Shown here: positions 1-53,648 of the stretch, piece after piece
Layout of the letters: each line of letters starts with the position of its first letter
Numbering within the stretch: the stretch's first letter is position 1
DNA from: Anthoceros angustus
Taxonomy: Eukaryota; Plantae; Anthocerotophyta
DNA length: 64,000 bases
Reading direction: 5' to 3'
Assembly: GCA_010909165.1 (NCBI GenBank)
Contig: VJWM01000025.1
Span: 1,550,001 to 1,614,000 of the forward strand
The notes under the pieces: generated by a model
Database searches by the model: none
What the model saw: only the letters and a program-made list of their open reading frames with translations
What the model was told of the DNA's origin: nothing
Translations under genes and position numbers: made by a program

Positions 1-140
1 AACAGCTTGAACCTGCTGCACCAACGAGTGACCAAGAGACATGCAGGAAGAGAGTGGGATGGCCTACTTGAGCTCCTCAACGTTCAAGAACCGTGGAGCT
101 GGTCTCAAAGTCTTGTTTTTGTCCCTGTCATCTCTATCAC
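1..140 (-). pseudogene. SPT5: SPT5 gene fragment (unit copy 0; KOW1-proximal exon plus intron)
   Basis: Near-identical to 25784-25925; minus strand reads [25 protein letters not shown] followed by a GT intron. Confidence 0.75.
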
Positions 141-195
141 CCTGCACGTCAATTGACGGAACCCCACTTTCAGTGAAAGATGGTTATGTACCATG

Positions 196-2664
196 ATATG
201 TGGTACATGTACTGGGGAGCCTTCACGCTTGCCCTTCTTGATGGCTACCGCTGTGCCATCGGCGAGCTTGCCACGGTACACTGTGCCGAAGCCGCCGGCT
301 CCGATCTGGGCCGAGTCCGAGAAGTTGGAGGTGGCGGGAGTTCCCCAAGGGCATCACCGTCACCGTTTGCCTCTCGAGCAGCGTGGCGATCAAGTCCGCA
401 TCTTGCTGGTGCTTTTGGAATACACTCTCCATCTCCAGAGGGAGAACAAACAACTGGCCGCGCAAACCAATACAGCGGAAACCACTATTGCCACAACCAC
501 CCACAGGTTGATACCATGGCCAGCAGGCGCAGCAGGTTGATTCCTGCATGGCGGAAGAGGTTCGCCGCAGAGGCCCGGATTGTCGGCGAAGAAGGTGGCG
601 TTACTGAGATCCGGACGCAGGCCACCTGGGATGGGTCCTGAGAGATTGTTGCCGGACAGATTGATGGTTCTCAGGTTAGGCAATGCAAAGAAAAGCTTAC
701 CAGGTATTTCTCCTGACAGATTGTTGTGGCTAAGGTCCAAGACTTGCAGAGTGAGAGGAAAGCTGTCTGGAATGGGGCCGGACAGCTTGCTGTGGGATGC
801 GTTGAAGTGCAGCAAGCTCGGCAGACCTGTGAAAAGCTCAGCCGGCATCGTTCCTCCAAATTGGTGTTGCTCAGATCCAACACGCCGAGAGTGATGGGTA
901 ACCTTCCGGGAATGAGGCCAGATAATCTGTTGTTGGACAGGTTGAGGAAGGTCAAATTGGGCATGGAAAGATAGAAAAGCTGGTCCGGCACTGTTCCGCT
1001 CAAGTTGCAAGATGCAAGATCCAAGATCTGGAAGGAGTCCAGACTCGTTGGCCTGGAACAATTGAGGCTGTCCGGCAATGGTATGCCCATGAGATCGCTA
1101 CCCCAGACGAAGTTCCTCCAGCGGGGGACATCAGAAAAAGGTCGGCACAAAATCTCCAGCATACTCTGCAAAGGATTGGGGAACTCCTCGGAATGTGTCA
1201 TGTTGAAATCGTGGCTCAAGTCCCAAACTGGCCTGACCGCCAGGTCCTCGTCCGAGAGGAAGTTGGTGAGGTCCCAGTGAATCGGTTGCCTTGCACTCGG
1301 ATACTGGTGGAAATCGCCTGAGAATGTTGCCGAGAACTTTGATGAAGTCACCTGACAGTTGGTTGTTTTGAAGCCACAGAACCGGGATATAATCGTCCCA
1401 GCCTGAGGCGAAGTGGAAGGAAGAGAGCCATTCAGCTGATTGTGACTCAGATCCAGGGTAAATATTGGAGATACGAATCCACCTGGAGGGTCGGGTATGC
1501 TGCCAATCAGAGAATTGCTGGAGAGATTCAAATGCGACAGCCCTGCACCATATAGGAAAGTGGCAGGAATGCTGCCATTCAGCTCATTTCCAGACAGATC
1601 CACCCATCCAGCCAATTGCGCCGTGAAATCCGGAGGGATGGGGCCAGACAAGTTGTTGTGGGACAGGTCCACGTAAGTCAGGTTTGGCAACAAGGACGGG
1701 ATGTGGCCTTGCAGATCGTTCCATGACAGGTCCAACACCTGAAGACTGGGAAAATTGATGCCTGCGAACTCCGGTAACTGTCCCCAATTTGGTTCCGGAA
1801 AGGTTCACCCGTTGCAGAGCAGAATGAATCTGGAAGAAGGAACTGGTGAAGTTTGTGAAGCTGTTTTGGGCTGCATCCAGGAATCGCAGGGTTGGGGCAG
1901 AGGGCACCTCCCGCTCAAATTGCTGGTGAGAGAGACATGGGCGAGGCGTGTTAGCCCTTCCAAACTGGGACGCTTCCGTTCAAGAAGTTATCAGACAGAT
2001 CCAGGCTCACGAGTTTGGTGAGACTGCTCAATTCCTCAGGGAAGCCTCCAACCAGTTCACTGTCAGCAAGAGACAAACCCGTAGCCTCCGACAGCCCCCG
2101 AAGTTGAGAACCGTCGTCACAGACCCATGCCTGGGTGGCAAGCCCTGTCCGCATAGAGGTAATGGAGGTTGGGGACCTGCGCTCAAAGAGTTTCTGGTGT
2201 CCCAACTTCCGGAAACGTCCAGCCATGTCAGCCCAGACAACAACTCAAGATCATTATACCGATTTACCATCATATCGGAGTTGGACGACAGGTCCAACTC
2301 GGAGGCTTCCCAGACCACCAACTGGTAGAGTGCGGTACCCACCGACAGGGAGCAAGCGGAGAAGTCGAGGCTGAGCACAGCGGACTGAATCGCACAGCAC
2401 CCGAATCCAACCACACGGCGTATCGTCGCTAGCGTTCCAGCTCCTGAAGTCGGCCTCACACCCCTAGAAACCCCTGGTTTTCCGTAAAATTCAACAGGAC
2501 CTGTCCATCGCGGGAGAGCTCAGCACCGACGTTGCTTCCGAATCGGCATAGGAGCAAACTGCACATCATGAGTGCCACGCATATCCCCAAGCTAAGGCTC
2601 GCACCACCCCGCCAAAACTGGTGATCCACAAGCCGCCCTACCCTAACCTGCAGTGCAGAGGCCC
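196..2664 (-). pseudogene. LRR-RLK copy 0a, kinase mostly deleted and extreme N-terminus missing
   Basis: ORFs 390-1061, 671-1738 and 2028-2459 carry LRR and TM segments nearly identical to copy 2 (27360-29850). Junctions at ~190 (TGGTACATG) and ~2660 (GCAGAGGCC). Confidence 0.8.
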
Positions 2665-3746
2665 GGATTGTCGGCGAAGAAGGTGGCGTTACTGAGATCC
2701 GGACGCAGGCCACCTGGGATGGGTCCTGAGATTGTTGCCGGACAGATTGATGGTTCTCAGGTTAGGCAATGCAAAGAAAAGCTTACCAGGTATTTCTCCT
2801 GACAGATTGTTGTGGCTAAGGTCCAAGACTTGCAGAGTGAGAGGAAAGCTGTCTGGAATGGGGCCGGACAGCTTGCTGTGGGATGCGTTGAAGTGCAGCA
2901 AGCTCGGCAGACCTGTGAAAAGCTCAGCCGGCATCGTTCCTCCAAATTGGTGTTGCTCAGATCCAACACGCCGAGAGTGATGGGTAACCTTCCGGGAGGC
3001 CAGATAATCTGTTGTTGGACAGGTTGAGGAAGGTCAAATTGGGCATGGAAAGATAGAAAAGCTGGTCCGGCACTGTTCCGCTCAAGTTGCAAGATGCAAG
3101 ATCCAAGATCTGGAAGGAGTCCAGACTCGTTGGCCTGGAACAATTGAGGCTGTCCGGCAATGGTATGCCCATGAGATCGCTACCCGCTAGACGAAGTTCC
3201 TCCAGCGGGGGGACATCAGAAAAAAGGTCGGCACAAAATCTCTCCAGCATACTCTGCAAAGGATTGGGGAACTCCTCGGAATGTGTCATGTTGAAATCGT
3301 TGTGGCTCAAGTCCCAAACTGGCCCGACCGCCAGGTCCTCGTCCGAGAGGAAGTTGGTGAGGTCCCCAGTGAATCGGTTGCCTTGCACTCGGATACTGGT
3401 GGAAATCGCCCGAGAAATGTTGCCGAGAACTTTGATGAAGTCACCTGACAGTTGGTTGTTTTGAAGCCACAGAACTGGATATAATCGTCCAGCCTGAGGC
3501 GAAGTGGGAAGGAAGAGAGCCATTCAGCTGATTGTGACTCAGATCCAGGGTAAATATTGGAGATACGAATCCACCTGGAGGGTCGGGTATGCTGCCAATC
3601 AGAGAATTGCTGGAGAGATTCAAATGCGACAGCCTGCACCATATAGGAAAGTGGCAGGAATGCTGCCATTCAGCTCATTTCCAGACAGATCCACCCATCC
3701 AGCCAATTGCGCCGTGAAATCCGGAGGGATGGGGCCAGACAAGTTG
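2656..3746 (-). pseudogene. LRR-RLK internal duplicate (copy 0b), LRR segment only
   Basis: Repeats 563-~1660; ORFs 2689-2934 and 2957-3523 are LRRs. Ends at AGACAAGTTG joined to the unit boundary sequence. Confidence 0.8.
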
Positions 3747-3762
3747 AGGCCAGAAAAACCAA

Positions 3763-5643
3763 GGTGGATTCACACTATAACCGGTCTTGACTGACCCGTC
3801 AGTGCCGCTTCACGGCCTTGTTTTAAGTGGTGACCCGTTCGACCTCCCTTGGCATTCACAGATCACCGGTGGTATTGGCGAGTGGTCAGCACGAGTTTAG
3901 GATAGAGTTTACCTGTTTCATGAAAATTATTTAAATTATTACCGTATCTGAGGGCGATTCGGTGTTAATTAATTAAAGTTGAAAATTCAGAAATTATTAT
4001 ACTAAAATATTGAATGTATAAAAATTAATGAGTTTAAGATGCCAAAAACCAAGGGAATTAGATTTTGTGTGAAAATTAGGTTTTTAGGAGGTCTATATAT
4101 CCATTAGTTTTATATAGATACCTTTGTATTTTAATAAATGTTAAATTTTGATAGAATTATTTTATAAATATAGAAATTTTGAGAAATACAAATATTTATG
4201 TTGAACCTTAGTGTTTTTCAAAATAATTATCTCGGCATTATCCTGTTGAACCACCCCGAGGTAGGTATTCTATTTTTCTCCCCAAAACTTTTTCACGTTG
4301 TATATCCTGTACATGTGTCGTTATAAGGCACTTTGTCATGCACTTGCTTTTTCTTTCTTCTTGGTAGCTTCGAAAGCCTTCTTCTTATGCGTATTTCAAA
4401 TACCGCCCTTTTAGAGTTGTGGTGTGGAGCGGATTGGAAAAGAGCTTGGTGAAAATTATCATGGCACACAATGATGAGGTACATTTTTAAAACAATATTT
4501 GTATTAACGTATATTATTCAGGTATTGATATTTTTTTAATTTATTGATCTATGTAGGCACTTAATGACACCATACATTTAGGGTTAGCAATATTGTGTGT
4601 TATGGAGATCATATCCTCCACCCATATGAGAATGATGATAGGAGTTGCCGCAGAATGATTCAATTAAAGCGAGACGAAAAGAGAGACCATCCCGGATACA
4701 CGAACTCAATGGGCATGGAAAGGAGCCATATATTTGGAGACACTAGCAGATACAATGACAAGATGTTCAAGCATCGAATTGAGTGAACAAGGCCACCTTT
4801 CAACACATATGTTGAAGGGCACCACTATTTGCAAGACAAGATAATACTTTTGGAAGGTCAGGTTGGACAAAGAGTGCGAATGGCACTCTTCAAACTATCT
4901 AGTGGGAGAGATTGTACGCAGTGATTTGTTTGGGTACAAATTCTACATCATGTAAAGCAACGCTTTTATTTTGTAATGCACGACGCAAGATGACACTTAC
5001 ATCCCGTGGACTAACAAGCGTGAATGGAGCAATATGCAAATGAAATGGCTCGTATGAGGGGTTGAATTTGGAGGTGGCATGAAAATTAGGGTGAGGCATG
5101 GAGAAAGGCATGAAACTAGGAGGCGTATGAAGCTAGGAGGAGGCATGGAACTTGAAGATGGAGGCAATCTAGGATGAGGAAGCGCTCACTTGTGGCGAGA
5201 AGTTAGGTTGCCTTCCAATAGCAACATCTCGACCAAGATAGGAGAGAAGAGACTCGACGAGGATCGAGCCCAATGGTCTATCAAGAGAGTAGAGGTGCGA
5301 TGGAAGCCTCTTCTCAACTGCAAGAATGGAAGAGTTTGGAACATGCAAGCGGAAGGGAAGCCCGCAAGGCTTCACGGAAATTCAACTCGACATTAGGAAG
5401 GGAGCAAGAGACCGGAAGTGTGTTGATTAAGGAAGTATAATTTGCATAATTATGGATCATGGTAACTTAAAAGGCGCGCAATTAGTTCATAAGGCTCACC
5501 ACCGGCATGTCGGGCCAGACCGCTTCACCCCTAGGTACAAATCGACACCATTTTTCGATGGACCGCTTGATAGTGTGAATGGACGCCATCTCCTCGACCT
5601 ATAGTATGCCTTGGGGTTTCGACTTACCACCGGTGAATCCACC
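3763..5643. mobile_element. Non-autonomous TIR element, PIF/Harbinger-like
   Basis: Inverted repeat GGTGGATTCAC (3763-3773) / GTGAATCCACC (5633-5643). Flanked by CAA (TAA in copies 2 and 3) and TAA. AT-rich interior with subterminal TTCAC motifs; no recognisable transposase. Confidence 0.5.
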
Positions 5644-6846
5644 TAAGTAGGTGGCCGATTCGACATTCTTCATTTGTAAATTTTAAAATTTATACATTAT
5701 GATATAATAATAAAAATATGAAATTTCAAATAAAATTAGTAAATAATATCTACTATATGGGATTAAAAAATGTGGTTGCATTTGCTCGGGACGTTCAGTA
5801 GCTCTAATCGGACATAGAGTTGCCTTAACCGGATTATGTGTGCCTCTAAACCTGGATAGACTACAAAGAAATTGAACGGGGTTCATCGTGCTCGACAAGC
5901 ACTTGTAATTGGGCAGCTGCCAAATGACGTTGTTGCAAGACGCTTTATCATTCGGAAACGATGTGAGGTATGGATGCGCAATTGCGGCTTGGCACTCCTC
6001 GCATCTCGATGCTCATGGCCTATTTGTCTTGCTTTCCTTGCTATGAGCTCATCCAATTTTACTTCTTCGCACCAAGCTTAGTAATGTCTTGGCCTCCTTC
6101 TCCCTCGATCTCGCCATAGCCTTCTCCATTGCTACTTTTGCCTTCCTCTCGCCCTTCTCAACCTTATCCTTTGTTTCCACTGCTTGCTTGGTGAGCTTGC
6201 TCAGTCTTTTCTCTTCCTTAGCCCTTCCCTTTGTACCTGCTTCCTATTCTATCAATTTTGTTTCAACAATTCCTTTGATGTTAACACGACAATAGACATG
6301 TATGCGAGCCTCTCGTGGTTTCGATCTATGGCAAGGGCTGGAAAGGTGTGAGAATTGCCTTCAACTAGGCAGATCATTGGATATAGCTACCGTACTCACC
6401 AGGGACGAGGAGACTATCCACTGCTCATGGTGTAGACATTGATGATCGTGTGCCTTGGAGTCTCTTGACGCAGTATTCTTCGTCCATGTCGTTGATTACC
6501 TCCAATTGCTTCTTCCTACTTCTTCATGTTCCCAAGATCCCGCCTCGCCTCCAAACACGCTAGTTCGGTTTGTAAGTTGTGAAAACTCTCACTGCTTCCT
6601 TGTCCCAGCCAATGTTGCTTCCTTATCCCACCTAATACCGGCATAGTGCTCTCCGCTTGAAGGAGCTTGATTATGATGAGGATCTCGAGATGTCTCTGTG
6701 ACAACGTATTTTGAACATATACGAACCTTGAGAGACTTGATGTCCGCTTCTCGGCTCGAGCCAATTGTAAATTTAGGTGTGTCTAGAATGGGGCCACCTA
6801 TTATGTTGGGCGTAGTGATGGGTTTGATGAGCCAAACACCGCATTG

Positions 6847-7300
6847 ATGTGAAAGCCACATCAAGCACTTGCTTGTGAAAGCCATACTAAGCACTTGCTT
6901 CAATGTGAAAGCCACATCAAACATCGCTCAATGTGGCTTTTGCTTCGTAAAGCCACATCAAACACTTGCTTCAATGTGAAAGCCACATCAAACACTTGCT
7001 TCCATGTGAAAGACACATCAAACACTTGCTTCCATGTGAAAGCCACATCAAACACTTGCTTCAATGTGAAAGCCACATTAAACACTTGCTTTCCGTGTGA
7101 AAGACACATCAAACACTTGCTTCCATGTGAAAGCTACATCAAACACTTGCTTCAATGTGAAAGCCACATTAAACACTTGCTTTCCGTGTGAAAGACACAT
7201 CAAACACTTGCTTCCATGTGAAAGCCACATCAAACACTTGCTTCTATGTGAAAGTCACATCAAACACTTGCTTCGATGTGAAATCCACATCAAAGACTTC
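6847..7300. repeat. 30-bp minisatellite (ATGTGAAAGCCACATCAAACACTTGCTTCN), ~15 units
   Basis: Direct tandem units seen in sequence; 10-aa periodic ORFs (CESHIKHLLR / VKATSNTCF). Confidence 0.95.
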
Positions 7301-7510
7301 CACAAAAGGACGGTCACAAAAGCAAAAAAGACGGTCACAAAAAAAAAAAGATGGTCACAAAAAGAAAAAGGAAGATCACAAAAGGAAAAAGGACGGTCAC
7401 CAAAGGAAAAAGGACGGTCTCAAAGGAAAAGGACGGTCACAAAAGAAAAAGATGGTCACAAAAGAAAAAGGTCACAAAAGAAAAAGGTCACAAAAGAAAA
7501 AGGACGACAA
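7301..7510. repeat. ~20-21-bp purine-rich minisatellite (AAAAAGACGGTCACAAAAGG-like)
   Basis: About 10 degenerate units of AAAAGGACGGTCAC. Confidence 0.9.
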
Positions 7511-7846
7511 TAGGGCATTGCCTTGACAACCACATTTACCTGTCCCTAGCCGCAACGAGCAACATGCGGCGCGCCGCGGATGCACACAGGTCGGGTGTGG
7601 ATACATACTATGGACCATGGTGGCTTTTATGGACATGAGGCGACGTGTACGCCCCTGCGCCGGAGCATTATTAAAGAGGCTTCGGAGATTCGTTGATGGG
7701 ATGCATCCAGACTCAGACCACCTTGACAAACCCCATGCTGAACGTACCCTATGGCATGGAGGATTCCGGCAGTGTATGGTTGAACCATGTCAGCAATACC
7801 ATTCGCTGACCTGTGGGGATGCTAGCTCAGGATGACTCCTGCAGAT

Positions 7847-8950
7847 GTGGTTCTCCGGAAGAACAAAATCCATTCACAAAATGGTGGACACGGTGAGCAT
7901 CTCTCATCTCCTATTTTTCGATCCGCTACAGGACTTTGATTCCAGAAGCCCGTAATGCCAATGCCAGCTTCTCAGAATGGCCACTTCACGCATCTTCCTC
8001 AGATACGCGCTTTAGCACCAAGTGCGTGTGTGGCACATGGCCTCCATCGTCCTTGCAACACACAATTCAAGCTGCTTAGCTTCTTCAAGGACATGTCGTC
8101 CCTGTCTTCTCCCACAGCGAATGTGTGCATCTGGCTGTTCACCTCAATCCACGCCCATGCAGCCTTCTTGAATGGACCTGACCTCTTTCCCAGGTTCTCT
8201 ACCCTCTCTACATCCTCCACATGCCAGCATCTGTGTACACATTTCCAAGTAGCACATATGCTGCTGCATTTTAGGTTCAAGTTTTATAAGTTGCTCAAAG
8301 CATCGACCCTCACGCTCAGGATCTCCATGGCTTTTGCACGCATTCAGCAAGGCTTTCCACCTCACAACATCATTCTCAAAGGGCATGGAGTACAACAACT
8401 TCCCTGCCTCATCCAGACGCCCCTGGCTCGCCCAAGGATGTTATCCATGCAAGCGCAGTGATAAACCCCAGATGAGATCCCGCCATGCTCCTGCACCATG
8501 CGTTCAAAATACTGCTGACCCTCATCCACCAGTCCAGCGTGTCTGCATGCCACGGAAGAGCGTGCATAAAGAGTCCAAGCTTCTTCACCAAGCCCTGGCT
8601 GAACAAAATCCTATGATCATGGTATTCCACGTCACCAAACTAGTTTCTGGCAGGCAGTCTGTCCAACACTCTGCAACAATCCTCTAAGCTACCACATTCT
8701 GCATACATGCCCACCACACTGGTACCAACAACCAAATCAGCTTCTAGACCTATTTCTTGTGGCTGAAAATGGGGCCCCTCCCCTGTATGTCACCAAGCCA
8801 GCACATGCATTCAGGAGGCAAACAAACGTGAAACTATCAGCAGGCATCCTCCAGGACAGCTCCTCAACGAATGGCCTCCAGTTGCATACATCTGGAAAGC
8901 CTAAGAGCTTCTTTGCCGAACCCTTGGTGTGCATGCCCTGCAATCAAGCC
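7847..8950 (-). pseudogene. PPR-E-DYW:KP-type editing factor remnant (copy 1)
   Basis: Broken frames give LIAGHAHQG, FENDVVRWKALLNACKSHG, KKAAWAWIEVNSQMHTFAVGE, GHSEKLALA and RDAHRVHHFVNGFCSSGEP. Confidence 0.8.
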
Positions 8951-11470
8951 ATACCCCACTGGGTCTGGCTCCAACAGCGGCTGAGACTCTATGAAGCTGT
9001 TAGGAAATCGGTGGTGCGTTTCGATGGGGTATTGGTGGCGTTCTCCGGGCCACCCCAGCTGTTCGAGTCCATTTTGCAGGGGGCAGAAGCTGGGGCTCTA
9101 CTCAGGTTCCAAGCTCTATCCCGCATTGGCGTCCGCATACCCTCATGAATGGGGGTTGCTGCGAGAAAAAGAATATCAGACCATGATCATACAAAGGCAA
9201 GGCTATGTCAACACAACTAGATTGATCATCACACTCACCTGATGGATCCATGGGAGAGTCATGAAGGAGCCTGGGTGCATGGGAGTTCTGGAAGGGTGCG
9301 TAGGTATTTCACCACCAAGTCCATATCTACAGGATTCCCTGCAAGGAAATGGCAGAGGGTTTATAAATACGCTTCTAACAAGAGATCCTTCCAAGCTACT
9401 GACTTGAGTCTGTCACAGGAGCACAGACCTGAAGGAGCTCGAAGCCATCGGCGTGTCACCAATGTCTGAGAGTTGATCTCTCCGCACTGCCACACGATCA
9501 GATGCAAGCTCAGACACAACATCCTAGATAGACAGCACCTCAGAAGCCGGCAGTTCAGAGTTGTGAACAATTGTTTGGACAAACACACACAAGGAGGACA
9601 CAAGGCATAACTGTACCCTCCTCCATTTGAGACTCTAGGTCAAATCGAACAGTGGTGTTTGTACATCCTTTACACGGCCTCGGTAACCTTTGGACCGCCC
9701 CAATCTTATTTGACTGTCCTCCCAAGTAGCCCCTCATCTCTTAGGGCGTGGCCCCATTTCGGCCACCATAACCTCCTCCAAACCCTGCAGTCAATTTTAT
9801 CTCAGCAACGTTGGTCTACCTACGAAACCCAGGAACATCACGGTGCCTGCAGAAGGCCAGTCAAACCTAACACTTTGAGGAAGGTACCGAGATGGAGGAT
9901 TTAGGTTGCTGAAGCTTGATGTGACCGCCTCTGCAAGATAGCCCAAGAACTTCCAAAGTTGCAGACACGTTGAATTGCATGCACATATAATCCCAATGCC
10001 TATCAATTCCAACCACCGTCGTCAAACCAAAACTTCAATGTAAAGAATTAAGGTCCATACACAGACTACCAATACTGTTTGCCCGACAGCCTCCGCATGC
10101 TGAACACACATAACAAAGGGCTTACCACTGCTTCATTCCCACTTATACCACCAAGTGCAACACACACTTGTGATCGCACACAAAAAAGCCACCATTCTCC
10201 AAGTGGTGACGGTCATATATAAATAGGATGATGCGGTTTACGTGCTCCACCGGCTCTGTCTACCCTGTACATCAGTTGCATCAGCTACACCAAGACTACC
10301 ATTTTGCTGACTGATGTCTACCAGAATTGAACATTCACAGCTTGTACTAGACAGAAGAAGTACCTTGCAGAGACCATCACGCACTCATACAATGTCCTTC
10401 ACACCGACAGTTGCTTGACTGCCCAACAGAACCAAACAATACTCGCATCACAGGATATTGAGTTTTGGTAATTACTGGAATGCATGAACAATATGATCTT
10501 ACTCCAGTAGAACAAGGTCATGTAGCTCATAATCCCCAACTTCGAAAGACCTGTTGTGACCTCTGAGACTACATCAGCTGTGAAAACTTGAAACTGTCAC
10601 AGCGTTACACAAGCACTGTTGGCTCCAAGACCAAAGTCCACATGCACGCACATAAGAACCCCACTGGTCCACAGCATCACTTACATCCTCCGCTGTGGTA
10701 TCATTCAGAAAAACCACTGGATGGTGGTTCACCTTACCACCTTTCCAGTAGATCCTAAACGAGCCCCTTTGATCACCTTTACATGATCTCCGGTCTTGAA
10801 GAATTAACGCACTTGTGACTCAGTCACCGCAATGGTTTCCTGTCACATCAACAAGTAGAGTGATATACTGTGTTAACCGATCTGCTACATCCTGCAGCTG
10901 AGTGAAACGAAAAAACAAAACTAGAGGACATCAATTACCTTCAGCGACAAATCCTCTGGACGGATATATACTGTGTCGTCATCAACCACCTTTTCCACAT
11001 TTCCCATCAACTTCTGCAAGTCTCCTTCGATAAGCACAACAGCATCCCCTTTCATGAGCTTGCCCCTACGCTTTGAGGACAATGCTGGTGGAAGCCCCAT
11101 TGCATGTATACTGCCATCTTCTCCACATTTCTGGGGTTTCTGCACAGCAAAAGTTGGGACCACATTGGTGTCCACACTCTTCAGAGAGACCATCTTGTAG
11201 AGGCAACCATCCTTGAAAGTCATCCCATTGAAAACATGAAGGAGTTCTCCCGTCGCTACGTCACGCCTATAGTCAACAGGGATTCTCATGTTTCTGTACA
11301 GCAGCAAAGGTTTGCATGAGGTTCGTACAACAGCTTGAACCTGCTGCACCAACGAGTGACCAAGAGACATGCAGGAAGAGAGTGGGATGGCCCACTTGAG
11401 GTCCTCAACGTTCAAGAACCGTGGAGCTGGTCTCAAAGTCTTGTTTTTGTCCTGTCATCTCTATCACCCT
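8950..11470 (-). pseudogene. SPT5: SPT5 genomic fragment (KOW1-KOW5 to start of CTR) with GT-AG introns (copy 1)
   Basis: FNGMTFKDG..VSLKSV, MKGDAVVLIEGDL, FKTGDHVKVI, LGDYELHDLVLL, HPSRTPMHP and MRTPMRDRAWN match plant SPT5. Contains stops and frameshifts. Confidence 0.85.
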
Positions 11471-11978
11471 GCACGTCAATTGACGGAACCCCACTTTCAG
11501 TGAAAAATGTTCATCTAATGGTCATGTACCATGATACGTGGTACATGAGCCAGGCGCTCAGCCCGCTTTCAGTGAGCTGTTTGAGCTCACATGTTTGCTC
11601 GGGTCCGGACGTACCCGGTACAACCATCCAAAACGAAAACACGAGAACCTTGTCAGCATGAGCCGTTCTGCAAAGACGTCTATGGAGGTAGCATTGCTGG
11701 CAGGATGAAACGTGAGAAGCACTTTTCGGTACAAGTTTTCTTTGACACCACTTCACCAGCACCTCAATTGAAAGACTCCAAGGGCAGCGCCAGTCAGCTA
11801 TGTACATACCTCTAACCATATAGCTATGAACATACCTCTGACACATTGCGGACGCAGGGGACCAAGACACATTGTACACATTATTGTGATCATATTCGCT
11901 GTCTGCATGATGCGGGCTGTTGTTGCAATCCATCAGTCCATCATGAGTCAACAGCGATTGGCTACTAGAATGTTGGAA

Positions 11979-15424
<3,446 letters not shown>

Positions 15425-17127: not shown

Positions 17128-17720
17128 GGGCGAGGAGGAGCGAGCGGCGCGAGGGCGCGGCGAGGGAACGGGCGGGCGGGCGGGCGGGCGCTGGCGGGCA
17201 GGCGCGGCGGGCGGGCGGGCGGGCGCGGGCGCGGGCACGCGGGCGGCGCGGCGGGCGGACGCGGGCGCGGGCGGCGGCGACGCGGGCGGGCGGCGCGGGC
17301 GCGGGCGGCGCGGACGGGTGGCGCGGAGCGGGCGGAGCGGGCGCGGGCGCGGCGCGGCGGCGCGCGGGCGGGCGGGCGACGCGGCGGGAAATGCCCGGGC
17401 GCGGCGGCGGGCGCGCGGCGGGCCCGGGCGGTGAGGGCGCGGGCGGGCGGGCGGCGCGGGCGCGGAGGGGCGGTGCGCGGAGGGGCGGCGCGGGAGCGAC
17501 GGCGGGAGCGGGCGGAGCGGGCGCGGCGCGGAGCGGCGGCGGCGCGGAGCGGGCGGAGCGGGCGCGCGGGCGGTGAGGGCGCGGGCGCGGTGCGGGCGCG
17601 CGGGCGCGACAGGGTGCGGGCGCGGCGGGCGGACGCGGCGCGGTGCGGGCGGGCGACGCGGCGCGGGCGCGGGCGGGAAATGCCCGGGCGGGCGCGGGCG
17701 GCGGCCCGGACGGCAAGGCC
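17128..17720. repeat. Extreme G/C low-complexity tract (GGGC/GCGG-rich, almost no T)
   Basis: Composition seen directly; may be a consensus artefact. Confidence 0.7.
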
Positions 17721-36205: not shown

Positions 36206-36721
36206 GTCAATTGACGGAACCCCACTTTCAGTGAAAGATGGTTATGTACCATGATATGTGGTACATGAGCTAGGCGCTCAGCCCGCTTTCAGTGAGCTGT
36301 TTGAGCTCACAATAGTTTGCTCGGGTCCGGACGTACCGGTACAACCATCCAAAACGAAAACACGAGCACCATGTCTGCATGAGCCGTTCTGCAAAGACGT
36401 CTATGGATCCGGTAGCATTGCTGGCAGGATGAAACGTGAGAAGCACTTTTCGGTACAAGTTTTTCTTTGACACCACTTCACCAGCACCTCAATTGAAAGA
36501 CTCCAAGGGGCGGCGGCAGTCAGCTATGTACATACCTCTAACCATATAGCTATGAACATACCTCTGACACATCGGGGGGATCTAAAGTAGTGCCACGTAG
36601 GGGACCAAGACACATTGTACACACCATTATGATCATATTCGCTGTCTGCATGATGCGGGCTGTTGTTGCAATCCATCAGTCCATCATGAGTCAACAGCGG
36701 TTGGCCACTAGAATGTTGGAA

Positions 36722-40059
<3,338 letters not shown>

Positions 40060-40145
40060 GTTGATGCCACCCGCTCCCTCACGCAGCTCCTGAAATGAAA
40101 ACTGAGGACTGAAGGCGGACGACGCAACCTCGGCTTCAAGGTGGA

Positions 40146-40328
40146 TGTGAAAGTTATTACTTTGTGAAGCTCGTTACTCTGAATCGGTTTCATGCTAAGG
40201 GACACATTGTGAACAGACACGCCTCTTCGTTGTACAGACTTGTTAAATGCCTTTCACAGGCTCATAAACACACATGCTTTGCTTTTCTCTCCTCGTGTAT
40301 GTGTGTCTGGTCTGATCGCTTTGGTTCA
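40146..40328 (+). repeat. Copia 5' LTR (TG...CA)
   Basis: TGTGAAAG...TTGGTTCA followed by the PBS. Confidence 0.95.
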
Positions 40329-43300: not shown

Positions 43301-44805
43301 TTTCTAACAATACATGGACCTTGGTTGATCCACCGAAAGACAAAAACATCGTGGGAAGCAAATGGGTCTTGAGAAAGAAGCACAATGCAGATGGCTCTCG
43401 CGAGTTCAAGGCCGGACTCGTGGCAAGAGGATTCACACAAAGAGTGGAGTCGACTACTCGAATCCAGATCTTCAGCCCGGTAGTTAAGCTCACCTCGCCG
43501 TGTGATGATAGCCCTAGCTGCTTTATATGGTCTCTCCATACATCGCTAGATGTGGAGACCGCGTTTCTTCATGGAATTTTAAGAGAAGAAATCTATGTTC
43601 AACGACCTCCGGATATGAAGTAAAGGCCAAGAGTCCAAGGTGTGCCTTCTTGAAGACACTCTATGGGTGAGCGATCTCAGGAGGGTATGGTACGAGCATC
43701 TACTTGTATTTACTCAGCACGGGTTATGTTAAAAGTCTGGACTCTAGCGTCTTCACAAGACATAGGGGACAACAGATGCTTATGATGGGTCTCTATGTAG
43801 ATGACCTCATCATGGTTTCAAATGATGAACAGTATTTAGCGGAGTGCAAATCTGCTCTTCGGAAAGAGTTCAAAATGACTGATAATGGGAGTATGTCATA
43901 CTGTCTTGGTATTCAGGTTGTTCAGAATCCGTCTAATCATACTATTACCTTGCATCAGGGAACATATGTTTCTAACTTACTGACCAAGTATGAAATGTCT
44001 AGCTGCAAACCTGTAGACACACCCATGCAAACAGGTCCAAGACTAAGTAAGACTATGTCACCTCAAGTAGCTGAGGAAGCTGCTGAGATGCAATCAGTTC
44101 CGTATGCAGGCGTAGTAGGCAGTAGTGTTCAGCATTTAGCTCAATACACTAGACCAGATATAGCGTGTCCTAATGGCCACGTTTCCCAGTTCCTGTCCAA
44201 TCCTGGAAAGTTACATTGGGTAGCAGCTAAAAGAATCCTTAGATATCTTCAGCGCACGAGAACCCGTGGAATTCAGTACAAAGGAGGTCCTGATGCTGCA
44301 ACCAAGCTTATAGGTTGGACTGATGCAGATTATGCAGGCGATCCGGACTCTAGAAAATCCACAAGTGGTTATGTGTTCATGCTTGCAGGGGCCTGTGAGC
44401 TGGAAGTCAAAGAAACAAACCTCGATTGCACGAGTTCAGCTGAATCTGAATACATTGCTGCTGCCTCAGCCGCCAAGGAAGGACTATGGATTGTTCAGCT
44501 CCTTGAGACCTAGGTTACCCACAAGATGGCCCTTTGAAATTAATGTGTGATAACAGCTACCATAGCTCTCTCAAGAGATCTGAGGTTTCATGAGCGATCA
44601 AAACACATAGAAGTCGAGATATCACTTCCTTCGTCTCAAGGTGGACTTAGGAGCGCTAGTGTTGACGTACGTATCCACGAAGACCAGCTAGCCGACATTC
44701 TCACCAAGCCTTTGGGAAGATTAAACATGAGAGCTTTTGTGCAAGATTGGGGCTTGTTGATTTTGTGATGCCGATGTTTCAGATCATCTCGCTTCAAGGG
44801 GGGTG

Positions 44806-44982
44806 TGTGAAAGTTATTACTTTGTGAAGCTCGTTACTGAATCGGTTTCATGCTAAGGACACATTGTGAACAGACACGCCTCTTCGTTATGCACTTGTTA
44901 AATGCCTTTCACAGCTCATAAACACACATGCTTTGCTTTTCTCTCCTCGTGTATGTGTGTCTGGTCTGATCGCTTTGGTTCG
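44806..44982 (+). repeat. Copia 3' LTR
   Basis: Direct repeat of the 5' LTR after the PPT. Confidence 0.93.
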
Positions 44983-45347
44983 GTGGAGACCCGTGACTCA
45001 TGAAGAGCATATCCCGAGTGTGAGCAGGCCTTCCAAGTCGTAGTCGTAGGCTGAAACCCATGAAAGTCTTGAGCGTCACGAATTGTTGAGGGCTGTCGAT
45101 TCCCGTCCATGACCACGGTGAAGCACTTGAATCCATAAACAAAGGCGGAATGTGAGGCGCACGAAATTCAAGAAATTGATTTCAAATTGAATGTGGACGG
45201 GCGGTGAATTTTAAGCACACGAAGGAGCTGGTATCAAGAGCTGCACATGCACATGTCTCATGTGGCTTTACATCCAAGGCGACAAGCTCAAGTGTGCGTG
45301 AGCTTGTCCTCTTCCTTCTTCCTAAAACTTTTCTTCAAGTTTTCCGA

Positions 45348-46502
45348 TGCTGGACCTCTAATTGGGAACAATTGGGAGTAGCAAAATCGTCCCATTTAGA
45401 GGGGTTCCGTTTAGGCATTTTCATCTTTTTGAAAATAAAAATATTTAAAATAAAAATCTTTTAAATCAAAATTCGAAAGAGCTTAAAAGCTTCCAAAAAT
45501 CCAAAAATCCAAAATGCTCCCTCATACTACATAGCTGCCAACCTAATTCTAGTTTGCGGGTTAAAATAATCATCAATCCTTGATTGATCTTTGAGTTCTT
45601 TCATCCAATGACTAGCAATATGTTTTTCCAATTGAGAATGCAACTTCAAAGCATCAAGAGTGTTATGTGGCATCTCTTCCAAAACATCTTCGCTATCCTC
45701 ATAGCATTATCTCTGACATCCTTTGTCGTGACGCGGTCTTGGCGCTATGGTCTCCACGACGCATTCTCCTCACCCTCCTCATTGTGGAGGGATTAATGCT
45801 TGCCATATTTCGTCCTCCGTAGGAATATCGTAGTCTCCAATACTTCATCCTCACAATCCTAGACAATGCACTTTTAGAAGCGCTATTGAAAACTTCTCTT
45901 GTCCATCTAGTCAACTCCTTAAGTGTGCAAGAGTGTTGGACATAATATTCAAACCTCTTTCTTTTGTTGCTTTGTTAGGGTAGCATGCTTGCGCGGCGGC
46001 TTGGGCGGCATTGTTCCTACACGTCAAAGAGAATGGGTAAGGAACACATACAAAATATCTCACAGCAAGACAACAACTTACAACACCATAACACAAACTT
46101 ACAACACATAAGACAACTTGTACAATGAAACAACTTATGTACTAGGAACAATGCTTCTGATCACAAAGCATAGTGTACAGAACTACTACATATATAGGCC
46201 CAATCTCGATGACTGTCTATGTTTTATGATATAATCTCAATAGCCTTTAACTTGACATAATCTCAATAACTCATGATTTAATCTCGATAAGATGATTTCC
46301 TCAATTTTTTATTTTTTATAAAAAATATGTATTTTCCCTTTTACAGAGGTGTACTTGTATTGAATGTTTGGGAGACATGTTCCCATTTACAAATTAGAGG
46401 GGTTTCCCATTTAGCATGTAGCACATTCAAGGGAGTAAGCCCGGGCGTCCCATTTAAAGGGGGTTCCCATTTATAGGGGTCCCAATTAGAGGGGTTTGAC
46501 TG
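45348..46502. mobile_element. Non-autonomous Tc1/mariner(pogo)-like element
   Basis: Insertion absent from other copies. Right end TCCCAATTAGAGGGGTTTGACTG|TA; left end retains inverted CCTCTAATTGGGA (45355) but is damaged. CCCATTT..AGGGG subterminal repeats. Confidence 0.6.
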
Positions 46503-47245: not shown

Positions 47246-47313
47246 TGTGCGAGTCGGTCGAGCCCCTTCTTCGTGTGCGAGTCGGTCGAGCCCCTTCTTC
47301 GTGTGCGAGTCGG
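47246..47313. repeat. 28-bp tandem repeat x2.5
   Basis: TGTGCGAGTCGGTCGAGCCCCTTCTTCG repeated. Confidence 0.85.
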
Positions 47314-47580
47314 GTGTGAGCGCCTGCCCTTATGCGGTTTAATGCGTACATGCGTGAGAAACCCTAACGTAAAACCCACAGTCGCGCAATAGTATACGCC
47401 CCTACGCGCCAGAGCATTGATTGATGAGATGCATCCAGAGGCAGACCACCTTGACAAACCCCATGCTGAACGTACCCTATGGCATGGAGGATTCCGGCAG
47501 TGTACGGTTGAACCATGTCCGCAATACCATTCGCTGACCTGTGGGGATGCTTGCTCAGGATGACTCCCGCGGATGTAGCA

Positions 47581-48678
47581 TGTGGTTCTCCGGAAGACCA
47601 AAATCCATTCACAAAATGTTGGACACGGTGAGAGTCTCTCACTCTCATCTCCCATTTTTCGATCCGCGACAGGACTTTGCTTCCAGAAGCCCGTATGCCA
47701 ATGCCAGCTTCTCAGAATGGCCACTTCACGCATCTTCCTCAGATACCCGCTTTAGCACCAATTGCCTGTGTGGCACATGGCCTCCATCGTCCTTGCAACA
47801 CACAATTCAAGCTGCTTAGCTTCAAGGAAATGTCGTCCCTGTCTTCTCCCACAGCGAATGTGTGCACCTGGCTGTTCACCTCAATCCACGCCCATGCAGC
47901 CTTCTTGAATGCACCTGAACTCTTTCCCAGGTTCTCTACCCTCTCTACATCCCTCCACATGCCAGCATCTGCGTACAGATTTCCAAGTAGCACATATGCT
48001 GCTGCATTTTTAGGTTCAAGTTTTATAAGTTGCTCAAAGCATCGACCCTCACGCTCAGGATCTCCATGGCTTTTGCCCGCATTCAGCAAGGCTTTCCACC
48101 TCACAACATCATTCTCAAAGGGCATGGAGTACAACAACTTCCCTGCCTCATCCAGACGCCCCGGCTCGCCCAATGATGTTAACCCATGCAAGCGCAGTGA
48201 TAAACCCCAGATGTGATCCCGCCATGCTCCTGCACCATGCGTTCAAAATACTGCTGACCCTCGTCCACCAGTCTAGCGTGTCTGCATGCCACAGGAAGCG
48301 CGTGCATAAAGAGTCCAAGCTTCTTCACCAAGCCCTGGCTGAACAAATCCTATGATCATGGTATTCCACGTCACCAAACTAGTTTCTGGCAGGCAGTCTG
48401 TCCAACACTCTGCAAGAATCCTCTAAGCTACCACATTCTGCATACGTGCCCACCACACTGGTACCAACAACCAAATCAGCTTCTAGACCTATTTCTTGTG
48501 GCTCAAAATGGGGCTCCCTCCCCCACCAGCACATGCATTCAGGAGGCAAACAAACGTAAAACTATCAGCAGGCATCCTCCAGGACAGCTCCTCAACGTAA
48601 TGGCCTCCAGTTCCATACATCTGGAAAGCCTAAGAGCTTCTCTGGCGAACCCTTGGTGTGCATGCCCTGCAATCAAGC
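47581..48678 (-). pseudogene. PPR-E-DYW:KP remnant (copy 4)
   Basis: ORF 47739-48191, then GHSEKLALAYGLL and MRVRDSHRVQHFVNGFWSSGEP. Confidence 0.82.
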
Positions 48679-51195
48679 CATACCTCACTGGGTCTGGCTC
48701 CAACAGCGGCTGAGACTCTATGAAGCTGTGAGGAAATCGGTGGTGCGTTTCGATGGGGCATTGGTGGCGTTCTCCAGGCCACCCTAGCTGTTCGAGTCCA
48801 TTTTGCGGGGGGGCAGCAGCTGGGGCTCTACTCAGGTTCCAAGCTCTATCCCGCATTGGCGTCCGCATACCCTCATGAATGGGGGTTGCTGCGAGAAAAA
48901 GAATATCAGACCATGATCATACAAAGGCAAGGCTATGTCAACACAACGAGATTGATCATCACACTCACCTGATGGATCCCGCATGGGAGAGTCATGAAGG
49001 AGCCTGGGTGCATGGGAGTTCTGGAAGGGTGCGTAGGTGTTTTACCACCAAGTCCATATCTATATGATTCCCTGCAAGGAAATGGCAGAGGGTTTATAAA
49101 TACGCTTCTAACAAGGGATCCTTCCAAGCTACTTACTTGAGTCTGTCACAGTAGCACAGACCTGAAGGAGCTCGAAGCCATCGGCGTGTCACCAATGTCT
49201 GAGAGTTGATCTCTCCGCACTGCCACACGATCAGATGCAGGCTCAGACACAACATCCTAGATAGACAGCACCTCAGAAGCCGGCAGTTCAGAGTTGTGAA
49301 CAATTGTTTGGACAAACACACACAAGGAGGACACAAGGCATAACTGTACCCTCCTCCATTTGAGACTCTAGGTCAAATCGAACAGTGGTGTTTGTACATC
49401 CTTTACACGGCCTCGGTAACCTTTGGACCGCCCCAATCTTGTTTTGACTGTCCTCCCCAAGTAGCCCCTCATCTCTTAGGGCGTGGCCCCCATTTCGGCG
49501 ACCATAACCTCCTCCAAACCCTGCAGTCAATTTTATCTCAGCAACCTTGGTCTACCTACGAAACCCAGGAACATCACGGGTGCCTGCAGAAGGCCAGTCA
49601 AACCTAACACTTTGAGGAAGGTACCGAGATGGAGGATTTAGGTTGCTGAAGCTTGATGTGACCGCTCTCTGCAAGATAGCCCAAGAACTTCCAAAGTTGC
49701 AGACACGTTGAATTGCATGCACATATAATCCCAATGCCTATCAATTCCAACCACCGTCGTCAAACCAAAACTTCAATGTAAAGAATTAAGGTCCATACAC
49801 AGACTACCAATACTGTTTGCCCGAGAGCCTCCGCATGCTGAACACACATAACAAAGGGCGTACCACTCGTTCATTCCCACTTCTCATACCACCAAGTGCA
49901 ACACACACTTGTGATCGCACACAAAAAAAGCCACCATTCTCCAAGTGGTGACGGTCATATATAAATAGGATGCTGCGGTTTACGTGCTCCACCGGCTCTT
50001 GTCTACCCTGTACATCAGTTGCATCAGCTACACCAAGACTACCGATGGCTGACTGATGTCTACCAGAATTGAACATTCACAGCTTGTACTAGACAGAAGA
50101 AGTACCTTGCTGAGACCATCACGCACTCATACAATGTCCTTCACACCGACAGTTGCTTGACTGCCCAACAGAACCAAACAATACTCGCGCATCAGAGGAT
50201 ATTGGAGTTTCGGTAATTACTGGAATGCATGAACAATATGATCTTACTCCAGTAGAACAAGGTCATGTAGCTCATAATCCCCCAACTTCGAAAGACCTGT
50301 TGTGACCTCTGAGCTCTCCAGCGTTACACAAGCACTGTTGGCTCCAAGACCAAAGTCCACATGCACGCACATAAAAACCCCACTGGTCCACAGCATCACT
50401 TACATCCTCCGCTGTGGTCTCATTCAGAAAAACCACTGGATGGTGGTTCACCTTACCACCTTTCCAGTAGATCCTAAACGAGCCCCTCTGATCACCTTTA
50501 CATGATCTCCCGTCTTGAAGAATTAACGCACTTGTGACTCATTCACCGCAATGGTTTCCTGTCACATCAAAGGGTTAATCAAGTAGAGTGATATACTGTG
50601 TTAACCGATCTGCTACATCCTGCAGCTGAGTGAAACGAAAAAACAAAACTAGAGGACATCAATTACCTTCAGCGACAAATCCTCTGGACGGATGTATACT
50701 GTGTCGTCATCAACCTTTTCCACATTTCCCATCAACTTCTGCAAGTCTCATTCGATAAGCACAACAGCATCCCCTTTCATGAGCTTGCCCCTACGCTTTG
50801 AGGACAATGCTGATGGAAGCCCCATTGCATGTATACTGCCATCTTCTCCAGATTTCTGGGATTTCTGCACAGCAAAAGTTGGGACCACATTGGTGTCCAC
50901 ACTCTTCAGAGAGACCATCTTGTAGAGGCAACCATCCTTGAAAGTCATCCCATTGAAAACATGAAGGAGTTCTCCCGTCGCTACATCACGCCTATAGTCA
51001 ACAGGGATTCTCATGTTTCTGTACAGCAGCAAAGGTTTGCATGAGGTTCGTACAACAGCTTGAACCTGCTGCACCAACGAGTGACCAAGAGACATGCAGG
51101 AAGAGAGTGGGATGGCCCACTTGAGCTCCTCAACGTTCAAGAACCGTGGAGCTGGTCTCAAAGTCTTGTTTTTGTCCCTGTCATCTCTATCACCC
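48678..51195 (-). pseudogene. SPT5: SPT5 genomic fragment (copy 4, undeleted, with introns)
   Basis: ORFs 50748-51200, 49804-50076 (ILFIYDRHHLENGGF), 48933-49127 (PSRTPMHP) and 48539-48868 (MRTPMRDRAWN). Confidence 0.87.
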
Positions 51196-51630
51196 TGCAC
51201 GTCAATTGACGGAACCCCACTTTCAGTGAAAGATGTTCATCTAATGCTCATGTACCATCATGATACGTGGTACATGTCCTTCTGTCAGCATGAGCCGTTC
51301 TGCAAAGACGTCTATGGAGGTAGCATTGCTGGCAGGATGAAACGTGAGAAGCACTTTTCGGTACAAGTTTTTCTTTGACATCACTTGACCAGCACCTCAA
51401 GTGAAAGACTCCAAGGGGCAGCGCCAGTCAGCTATGTACATACCTCTAACCATATAGCTATGAACATACCTCTGACACATTGCGGGGATCTAAAGTAGTG
51501 CCACGCAGGGGACCAAGACACATTGTACACACCATTGTGATCATATTCGCTGTCTGCATGATGCGGGCTCTTGTTGCAAATCCATCAGTCCATCATGAGT
51601 CAACAGCGGTTGGCTACTAGAATGTTGGAA

Positions 51631-53648
51631 TCACAGATGTTGCATCTCCGTTTCAGGGTAATATGTGCTAGAGCTATTCCACAAAGAGGAATGAGAACTT
51701 AGCAGGGACAAGCTGTCACATGAAGTATCAACATCATCCTGCGCATTCTGTGGCTGCACACAATGGCGAGCATCATTCGATTGGGGAGCTCGACGCGTCC
51801 GAGTCCCAGTGAAGCCAGAGGGTTTGCAACTCGTTCCGGACCTCCTTCATTTCGGGACGATCTCGGGATCTGGGGGCCAAGCACCTGACAGCCAAAGCGG
51901 CCACACTGGCTATCGATGCCCGGAGGCTCCCATTCGCTGAACTGTGCGTGTCCGCCAACACAGGGTCGATCAGTTCTTGCCACTCCCCCCTGTCCATGGC
52001 AGACAGTGCCAGGGTCACCAAGCTAGTCGCTTCATAGCCTCTCCCAAAATCGATAGCAGGCTTTGAGGAAATGAGTTCCAGTAGCACAACGCCGAAGCTG
52101 TAGACATCGCTCCTGGGAGTCAGCTGGAAGCTGGAATAATACTCTGGATCAATGTAGCCCATGGTGCCTTGGATTGCCACTGTGGAGACATGAGTAGCTG
52201 CCTTGCTGGGAGCTAGCTTGGAGATGCCGAAATCTGCCACCTTGGCATTCAAGTCGTCGTCCAGGAGAATGTTGCAAGACTTGATGTCTCGGTGGAAGAT
52301 GGGAGGGTCGGCAGCCGAATGAAGATAGGCCAGGGCATCGGCAGTCTGTAGCGCTATGAGAAGGCGTTGCCTCCAGCTGAGGGGAGAGAATCCTTGTCTG
52401 GTCCCTTCCAGATGTTCCTTCAGTGTGCCGTTGGGGACAAACTCGTTTGTTCTCCATGGAACAACCCAGCAGCTTCACCAAGTGTCTGTGACTCACTCCC
52501 GACAGAATCCTGACCTCATTGAGAAACTGGTACTTGTACTGGGGAGCCTTCACGCTTGCCCTTCTTGATGGCTACCGCTGTGCCATCGGCGAGCTTGCCA
52601 CGGTACACTGTGCCGAAGCCGCCGGCTCCGATCTGGGCCGAGTCCGAGAAGTTGGAGGTGGCTTTGCGGAGTTCCCCAAGGGGCATCACCGTCACCGTTT
52701 GCCTCTCCAGCAGCGTGGCAATCAAGTCCGCATCTTGCTGGTGCTTTTTGGAATACACTCTCCATCTCCAGAGGGAGAACAAACAACTGGCCGCGCAAAC
52801 CGATACAGCGGAAACCACTATTGCCACAAGCACCCACACGTTGATACCATGGCCAGCAGGCGCAGCAGGTTGATTCCTGCAGGGCGGAAGAGGTTCGCCG
52901 CAGAGGCCCGGATTGTCGGCGAAGAAGCTGGCGTCACTGACATCCGGACGCAGGCCACCTGGGATGGGCACAGAGATCGTTGCCGGACAGATTGATGGTT
53001 CTCAGGTTAGGCAATGCAAAGAAAAGCGTACCAGGTATTTCTCCTGACAGATTGTTGTGGCTAAGGTCCAAGACTTGCAGAGTGAGAGGAAAGCTGTCTG
53101 GAATGGGGCCGGACAGCTTGCTGTGGGATGCGTTGAAGTGCAGCAAGCTCGGCAGACCTGTGACGAGCCCAGCCGGCATCGTTCCCTCCAAAGAGGTGTT
53201 GCTCAGATCCAACACGCGGAGAGTGACGGGTAACCTCTGGGGAATGGGGCCAGATAATCTGTTGTTGGACAGGTTGAGGAAGGTCAAATTGGGCATGGAA
53301 AGATAGAAAAGCTGGTCCGGCACTGTTCCGCTCAAGTTGCAAGATGCAAGATCCAAGATCTGGAAGGAGTCCAGACTCGTTGGCCTGGAACAATTGAGGC
53401 TGTCCGGCAATGGTATGCCCATGAGATCGCTACCGGCTAGACGAAGTTCCTCCAGCGGGGGGGTAGGAAAACGAAGCTCGGAACAACTTCTCTCCAGCAT
53501 ACTCTGCAAGGGATTGGGGAACTCCTCGGAAGGTGTCATGTTGAAATCGTTGTGGCTCAAGTCCCAAACTGGCCCAACCATGAGGTCCTCGATCGAGAGC
53601 AAGTTGGTGAGGTCCCCAGTGAATCGGTTGCCTTGCACTCGGATACTG
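51631..53648 (-). pseudogene. LRR-RLK copy 4, N-terminal half replaced by PPR sequence
   Basis: ORFs 52934-53638, 52516-52971 and 51773-52252; homology to other copies stops after CACTCGGATACTG at 53648. Confidence 0.85.

Follow-up and report, generated by a model that had tools for sequence, protein, structure and literature searches.

A tandem array of a leucine-rich-repeat receptor kinase gene with SPT5 and PPR gene relics in the hornwort Anthoceros angustus

Tandem clusters of leucine-rich-repeat (LRR) receptor genes that undergo birth-and-death evolution are represented by the rice Xa21 family and the tomato Cf-4/Cf-9 loci. To our knowledge, such hypervariable clusters have been documented almost entirely in seed plants. 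Here we describe an array of this general kind in a 64,000-nucleotide stretch of the genome of the hornwort Anthoceros angustus (assembly GCA_010909165.1, contig VJWM01000025.1, positions 1,550,001 to 1,614,000; hereafter the window), built from an LRR receptor-like kinase (LRR-RLK) gene and relics of two other genes, one for SPT5 and one for a pentatricopeptide repeat (PPR) protein. Like the Xa21 and Cf-4/Cf-9 clusters, the array combines head-to-tail paralogues, a hypervariable LRR region (Ka/Ks >1, the ratio of nonsynonymous to synonymous divergence) beside a conserved kinase or membrane part, signs of unequal recombination and gene conversion, transposon insertions, and truncated or pseudogene members. 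Unlike them, it resides in a seed-free hornwort, its unit carries two unrelated housekeeping-type gene fragments, its variable sites are not focused on the xxLxLxx face of the repeats, and no member within the window is intact. We read the locus, with a probability of roughly 0.6, as a birth-and-death cluster in which an intronless LRR receptor-kinase gene was multiplied locally by tandem segmental duplication.

All comparisons (self-BLAST, Pfam, repeat scans) cover the 64-kb window. Self-BLAST resolves positions 1-53648 into five co-oriented, receptor-bearing units on the minus strand, arranged head to tail and named A to E from left to right along the plus strand (Table 1). The offsets from unit to unit are 12.7, 14.5, 10.25 and 14.9 kb, the two largest containing private insertions of 4.0 and 4.8 kb. 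A preliminary description of this DNA, made from its letters only, had proposed at least five copies of a ∼10-13 kb three-gene unit, all on the minus strand and ending at position 53648. The five units spaced at 10.25-14.9 kb, the minus-strand Pfam matches for LRR/Pkinase, the SPT5 KOW domains and the PPR E motif, and the end of the array as placed by self-comparison all bear this out. Read along the minus strand, the unit consists of the intronless LRR-RLK, ∼480 nt of intervening DNA, the SPT5 fragment and, directly abutting it, the 3′ end of a PPR gene. Two short variable-number tandem repeats (VNTRs, with periods of 30 bp and 20-21 bp) follow the PPR relic, and beyond them a 2.6-kb spacer extends into the DNA upstream of the following receptor. 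Both the RLK|SPT5 and the SPT5|PPR junctions are identical across units, and the mosaic is therefore older than its amplification. Head-to-tail copies, common internal junctions and copy-specific later mutations, the features by which tandem segmental duplication is recognized, are all found.

The individual units also carry their own scars. In unit A the kinase is lost, and the SPT5 piece at 1-209 meets the LRR block with 9 bp of microhomology: the match at 1-209 and the match at 201-2663 (to 27357-29850) overlap by 9 bp. The extra partial LRR block A′ has comparable junction overlaps (9 bp at 2655-2663 and 10 bp at 3737-3746). Unit E is without the VNTRs and part of the spacer, and is cut in the middle of its LRR region at 53648. 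The 1.28-kb deletion common to units C and D removes the KOW2-KOW4 part of the SPT5 relic and is delimited by the self-matches of unit B, in which 6512-9827 matches 22274-25563 and the sequence from 11108 onward matches that from 25563 onward. Although C and D have this deletion in common, the ectodomain of C is 98% identical to that of A and only 85-87% identical to that of D. These conflicting segment histories therefore indicate recombination or gene conversion between units.

The repeated gene has the domain organization of an LRR receptor kinase. Pfam identifies LRR families (LRR_1/4/8, E 1e-22 to 5e-37) and Pkinase on the minus strand, and the Pkinase and PK_Tyr_Ser-Thr matches span profile positions 5-259. 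The LRRNT_2 domain (E 4e-4 to 1e-3) scores 21.0 bits in copy C, above the 20.7-bit cut-off, and 19.7 bits in copy D, just under it. In copy D, ∼19 LRR repeats are defined by regular expression, and within its 801-residue frame the hydrophobic stretch after the last LRR constitutes a single transmembrane (TM) segment, after which comes the kinase. The closest named relative is the Marchantia polymorpha LRR-RLK P0037 (AXG93_3102s1670), which has the same domain order, no introns and a collinear alignment. Its ectodomain is 35% identical over ∼570-660 residues and its kinase 58-71% identical to the array receptor; as a protein of another species, it is related to that receptor only distantly, as an orthologue or paralogue. 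A word search with the 801-residue ectodomain frame in a collection of 5.8 billion proteins, which does not include A. angustus proteins, returned generic LRR matches at 27-34% identity and none closer.

The divergence between units is concentrated in the ectodomain. Kimura two-parameter distances are 0.015-0.036 for the PPR and SPT5 relics, 0.012-0.021 for the kinase and 0.08-0.13 for the ectodomain, which has thus diverged 4-8 times as far as the dead SPT5/PPR passengers. Measured in the open frame of copy D, every pairwise comparison of A/C, B and D gives an ectodomain Ka/Ks of 1.5-1.9 (Fisher p 0.0007-0.04), versus 0.5-1.4 in an out-of-frame control at the same sites. The kinase has a Ka/Ks of ∼0.5, a value derived from few changes. 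Ectodomain substitutions fall 102/85/59 across the three codon positions, the third receiving the fewest (p 0.003). Indel runs in multiples of three make up 22 of 40 in the LRR region, 5 of 62 in the relics and none of 24 in the kinase (p 3e-7, the pairs being non-independent). These patterns show that the ectodomain was being translated as it diverged and that changes of amino acid were favored, and they point to past diversifying selection on it. The earlier suggestion that the receptor is the selected cargo of the unit thus stands in part: the Ka/Ks of 1.5-1.9, the in-frame indels and the third-position deficit speak for selection, but with none of the five copies intact that selection is past at best.

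As assembled, a full-length open receptor frame is found in 0 of the 5 copies, A and E being grossly truncated. The 801-residue frame of copy D leaves the kinase frame just past the TM segment, and its kinase lies in three frames. Copies B, C and D have in common the loss of one base (GG to G on the plus strand), by which DFGISKLAPS, as read in copy E, becomes DFGISS followed by a stop; beyond this, they are broken by indels of 1-2 bp only. A majority consensus of four copies still yields no open frame. Judged by their reading frames, B, C and D are probably pseudogenes, while some of the 1-2 bp frame breaks are probably sequencing errors. The small indels are mostly length changes in homopolymer runs of 3-6 identical bases (for example within 33550-37900), and they are commonest where the copies are nearly identical, the parts that are hardest to polish; the indel-to-substitution ratio is ∼0.5. 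This excess of 1-bp indels suggests residual long-read consensus errors and that frame-based pseudogene calls in this assembly are unsafe. An apparent nonsense substitution in the ectodomain of copy C was rejected, being part of a short out-of-frame stretch bounded by two 1-bp indels.

The first of the two relics derives from the gene for SPT5. In copy B, Pfam recognizes KOW1 (E 5.5e-11) and KOW2 (E 2.5e-9) at 10924-11454; these protein searches used single open pieces of the relic. A full-length reference, SPT5-1 of Arabidopsis lyrata (P0129), was obtained by a HMMER search of a representative library. By tblastn, its residues 306-837 are collinear with copy E from 51215 down to 48755, including TPIHEGMRTPMRDRAWN, and residues 325-813 are covered in copy B. 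The relic extends over about residues 306-840, from KOW1 to the C-terminal repeats, with the KOW domains and the repeat region in SPT5 order. There is no tblastn match to P0129 before residue 306 or past residue ∼840, and the 5′ third of SPT5 is missing from every unit. The blocks between matches start with GT and end with AG, as at 50666-50559 in copy E (GTAATT…GACAG), and a GTGAGT…CGCAG block precedes the TPIHEGMRTPMRDRAWN exon. Because these introns are retained, the SPT5 piece is a DNA-level copy and not a retrocopy, a conclusion that the preliminary description had already reached and that the GT-AG gaps in the tblastn mapping confirm. In-frame stops and frame changes mark the piece as dead. 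A PDB sequence search with an SPT5 exon gave no match.

The second relic is the 3′ end of a PPR gene, with readable terminal P-L-S-P2-L2-S2 motifs, weak PPR matches and an E motif (Pfam, E 4e-14 to 5e-13). DYW_deaminase is matched in copy E only and over its last third only (47367-47711, E 0.009), at 16 bits against a cut-off of 24. The DYW end is recognizable (…RVRDSHRVQHFVNGFWSSGE) and the tail reads SSGEPH, and the catalytic HxE/CxxC region is unreadable. At the position of the PG box the relic has KKAAWAWIEV (K-A-A-W-A, no K-P), and no ‘xHP’ follows. In the DYW:KP subclass of hornworts, lycophytes and ferns, KP replaces PG in the PG box, the active site is HAE, the tail is of the DRH/GRP type, and the ‘xHP’ following the PG box is missing in most proteins (PMC9478123). 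The relic resembles these factors in lacking ‘xHP’ and in its EPH tail, which recalls the hornwort ‘DRH’ variant, but differs from them in carrying K-A-A-W-A instead of K-P. The closest database fragment to its E/DYW piece, P0246 (50% identity), is of the PG type, and a PDB sequence search gave no match. The KP label that the preliminary description attached to the relic is tentative on this evidence.

We propose that the founding unit was ∼10-11.5 kb long and carried two dead fragments downstream of the receptor, joined to it and to each other at non-homologous junctions: a piece of SPT5 copied as genomic DNA and the 3′ end of a PLS-E-DYW PPR gene. This unit would then have multiplied head to tail and been reshuffled by unequal recombination, gene conversion, and microhomology-mediated deletion and duplication, with the SPT5 and PPR relics carried along as passengers. 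Within it the ectodomain would have outpaced the rest of the unit as amino-acid substitutions and in-frame indels were favored, and the copies in the window now look disabled. This account builds on what is observed: an array with common junctions, introns still present in the SPT5 piece, private insertions and deletions, and segments that contrast in divergence and selection. Unequal recombination as the amplifier and the passenger status of the relics are what we infer beyond this.

Several points weigh against this account. The variable residues of the ectodomain are not enriched at the exposed xxLxLxx positions (29% vs 27%, p 0.71), and the ectodomain Ks of 0.045-0.09 likewise exceeds the neutral divergence; exchange with older paralogues, or homogenization outside the ectodomain, may therefore feed into the excess. 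The model accounts for the amplification of the founding mosaic rather than for its assembly. Three unrelated, co-oriented pieces and two hairpins followed by CTGA at the RLK|SPT5 junction fit a Helitron-type origin, and the cassette lies between oppositely oriented copies of a 30-nt motif.

The spacers are rearranged in each copy in its own way. The 4.0-kb insertion between B and C is absent from the C-D spacer, where 15700-17123 matches 30014-31421 and the sequence from 21167 onward matches that from 31418 onward; none of its open pieces of at least 90 residues has a Pfam domain. The element upstream of copy D is flanked by a 5-bp target duplication and has long terminal repeats (LTRs) of ∼183 bp that differ by 3 substitutions and 4 indels, a tRNA-Met-type primer-binding site (TGGTATCAGAGC) and an internal 209-bp tandem duplication at 42821-43245. 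The substitution divergence of its LTRs, ∼1.6%, is near that between units. A palindromic core (GATGTG…CACATC) characterizes the 30-bp VNTR, which adjoins the A-rich 20-21-bp VNTR. Its motif occurs 5-12 times downstream of the PPR relic and once, inverted, ∼400 bp upstream of each receptor gene (for example at 30276-30309); it may act in regulation or represent a subterminal repeat of a transposon. Three spacer segments belong to single units, at 45345-46502 (1.16 kb), 4741-5100 (0.36 kb) and 5631-6512 (0.88 kb); none of them matches any other part of the window, and the pieces tested were free of Pfam domains. An Rfam scan of the window returned zero families.

To the right of the array lie two further PPR genes on the minus strand. 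The P-L-S triplets of gene 2 form a 312-bp tandem repeat at 57738-61069 (10.7 copies, 73-81% identical), and the gene ends in a PG-type E2 (KPPGQSWW) with no recognizable DYW domain. Farther on, the minus strand of 61300-62600 has open frames of low complexity that are rich in Gly, Glu and Arg, and the region includes 36-bp and (CCT)n repeats (61784-61886, 62484-62568); a 224-residue open reading frame here has no Pfam match.

Table 1. Coordinates of the array units, inserted elements and flanking genes within the window
Feature	Position	Strand	Remarks
Copy A SPT5 KOW1 relic	1-209	-	99% identical to 36059-36267; directly abuts the end of the LRR block (kinase deleted)
Copy A ectodomain (LRR)	201-2663	-	fragmented frame; 98% identical to C over 2.5 kb; tblastn match to Marchantia RLK P0037
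Extra partial LRR block A′	2655-3746	-	duplicate of 567-1655; 97.8% self-match
Copy B PPR relic	7502-8960	-	last PLS motifs, E1/E2, decayed DYW; homologous to the E-motif block of D
Copy B SPT5 relic, long form	8960-11547	-	KOW1 to C-terminal repeats; introns retained
Copy B LRR-RLK	11651-15462	-	kinase 11651-12880, ectodomain 12880-15462; many 1-bp frame breaks
Private insertion, B-C spacer	17124-21166		4.0 kb; opens with a 530-bp (CGGG)n-like tract
30-bp and 21-bp VNTRs, downstream of PPR relic	22601-23252; also 6949-7506, 32971-33493		Tandem Repeats Finder
Copy C PPR relic	23290-24730	-	vs D 94.3% by BLAST with gaps; 97-99.7% counting substitutions only
Copy C SPT5 relic, short form	24730-25994	-	1.28-kb internal deletion in common with D
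Copy C LRR-RLK	26101-29947	-	ectodomain block 27357-29947; activation-segment stop (DFSISS, then stop)
Copy D PPR relic	33537-34990	-	Pfam E_motif 5e-13 on 34003-34584
Copy D SPT5 relic, short form	34990-36267	-	Pfam KOW1_SPT5 2.7e-10 on 35834-36241
Two 7-bp-stem hairpins, each followed by CTGA	36228-36300	-	between RLK 3′ end and start of SPT5 homology
Copy D LRR-RLK	36722-40059	-	801-residue frame open across ectodomain and TM; ectodomain block 37630-40097
Private Ty1/Copia LTR retrotransposon, upstream of copy D	40146-44981	+	degenerate; RVT_2, integrase SH3, weak zf-CCHC (Pfam)
Copy E PPR relic	47302-48660	-	best-kept DYW tail; E_motif 3.9e-14
Copy E SPT5 relic, long form	48660-51276	-	P0129 residues 306-837; GT-AG introns
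Copy E LRR-RLK	51283-53648	-	without 5′ half of ectodomain (block 52528-53648, cut); 17-bp deletion in kinase N-lobe
Right end of array	53648-53653		mid-LRR fused to the middle of a PPR gene via ∼4 nt (CAGG)
Flanking PPR gene 1	53653-55386	-	5′ part only, cut at array boundary
Flanking PPR gene 2	56993-61210	-	long PLS array, PG-type E2; frame in about nine pieces

The preliminary description had interpreted the unit as a gene-capture cassette of a Helitron or Pack-type transposon. Helitrons end in a 3′ hairpin followed by CTRR, begin with TC and insert between A and T. Maize Helitrons and rice Pack-MULEs are likewise co-oriented mosaics of intron-containing fragments of unrelated genes, and a Helitron-like or Pack-type element containing the receptor might have picked up the SPT5 and PPR fragments, for instance by bypass of its 3′ end, after which either replication of the element itself or a later phase of unequal recombination would have amplified the composite. 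We regard this as unlikely. Intron-containing genomic fragments, all co-oriented, are indeed present, but both traits are equally expected from DNA rearrangement without a transposon. A relaxed search of the 10.2-kb unit for Helitron 3′ ends returned only two hairpin+CTRR motifs, both at the RLK|SPT5 junction, where shuffled sequences average 0.42 per unit; the pair, which is internal to the unit, resembles Helitron termini at this one junction and is the only Helitron-like feature of the cassette. It could represent old Helitron 3′ ends or palindromic filler from template switching at the breakpoint, as template switching in repair also makes short palindromes. The CTGA is followed by A, versus the T expected at a Helitron insertion site, and no hairpin+CTRR motif occurs at the SPT5|PPR junction or past the PPR relic. 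The 30-nt motif, present once in inverted orientation upstream of the receptor and repeatedly downstream of the PPR relic, also speaks for a transposon. Among inverted pairs of at least 18 nt, however, this 26-34 nt VNTR motif (79-89% identity) is the only one that brackets the cassette. Long terminal inverted repeats with a target-site duplication, the hallmark of Pack-MULE and Pack-type elements, were not found around the cassette, whose edges have no matching flanks, and Pfam detects no Rep/helicase or transposase domain in the spacers or private inserts. The defining termini, target-site features and coding capacity of maize Helitrons and rice Pack-MULEs are thus not seen in the window; moreover, and again unlike those elements, one ‘fragment’ is a complete 3.4-kb receptor gene, and the copies are strictly local, contiguous and tandem, each with its own rearranged 2.6-kb spacer. 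Of the earlier interpretation, the DNA-level origin, the tandem amplification and past selection on the receptor are supported, and the transposon mechanism is not supported. A bolder version, to which we attach a slim chance, treats the unit as a composite Helitron-like (end-bypass) or Pack-type element with a complete immune-type receptor, the array arising by rolling-circle or element-driven replication and not by unequal crossing-over. The hairpin+CTGA pair would then be old 3′ ends and the 30-nt palindromic motif a subterminal repeat, and the amplification of receptor genes in a hornwort would have been driven by a transposon.

A different origin for the mosaic is suggested by the flanking genes. 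The RLK, SPT5 and PPR genes may once have been same-strand neighbors, the SPT5|PPR junction being the first tandem-duplication breakpoint, which cut both flanking genes, and a later deletion having taken the 5′ part of SPT5. The array stops precisely at the co-oriented 5′ part of PPR gene 1 (53653-55386), next to which lies another PPR gene, the PLS motifs of the relic have ∼72-78% DNA identity to the repeats of PPR gene 2, and short-microhomology deletions are frequent in the array. We nevertheless consider this route improbable. The boundary links PPR gene 1 to the middle of an LRR region and not to the relic, which calls for an additional deletion of 5-6 kb; the relic and PPR gene 1 share 42% identity at the protein level and only a 29-nt DNA match, whereas PPR genes 1 and 2 are 73-75% identical in DNA; the PG-box region of the relic (KKAAWAWIEV) differs from the PG type of gene 2 (KPPGQSWW); and the missing 5′ third of SPT5 affects every unit. 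The low similarity also weakly contradicts the idea that the PPR relic is the missing 3′ half of PPR gene 1, which we rejected. It is, finally, very improbable that the array reflects the expansion of one or two true copies by mis-assembly. The abundant 1-bp homopolymer indels, the indel/substitution ratio of ∼0.5 and the 4 indels within the 183-bp LTR pair do reveal an imperfect consensus. The ectodomains, however, differ by 8-13%, one unit contains a private transposon insertion with its target duplication, and private deletions and duplications range from 17 bp to 1.3 kb. Since assemblers do not invent private insertions, deletions and duplications of this kind, the array is not an assembly artefact.

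Local tandem duplication of the receptor gene, which remains our preferred explanation, makes this an otherwise ordinary kind of locus whose copies in the window are probably dead. Its unusual cargo is informative in two respects: the dead SPT5/PPR passengers provide a built-in neutral yardstick, and their junctions are unique tags for the history of the array and for a test of the transposon origin. The evolution of plant immune receptors classically draws on tandem gene clusters of this type, with hypervariable ectodomains, and this hornwort example carries the pattern into an early-diverging lineage of land plants.

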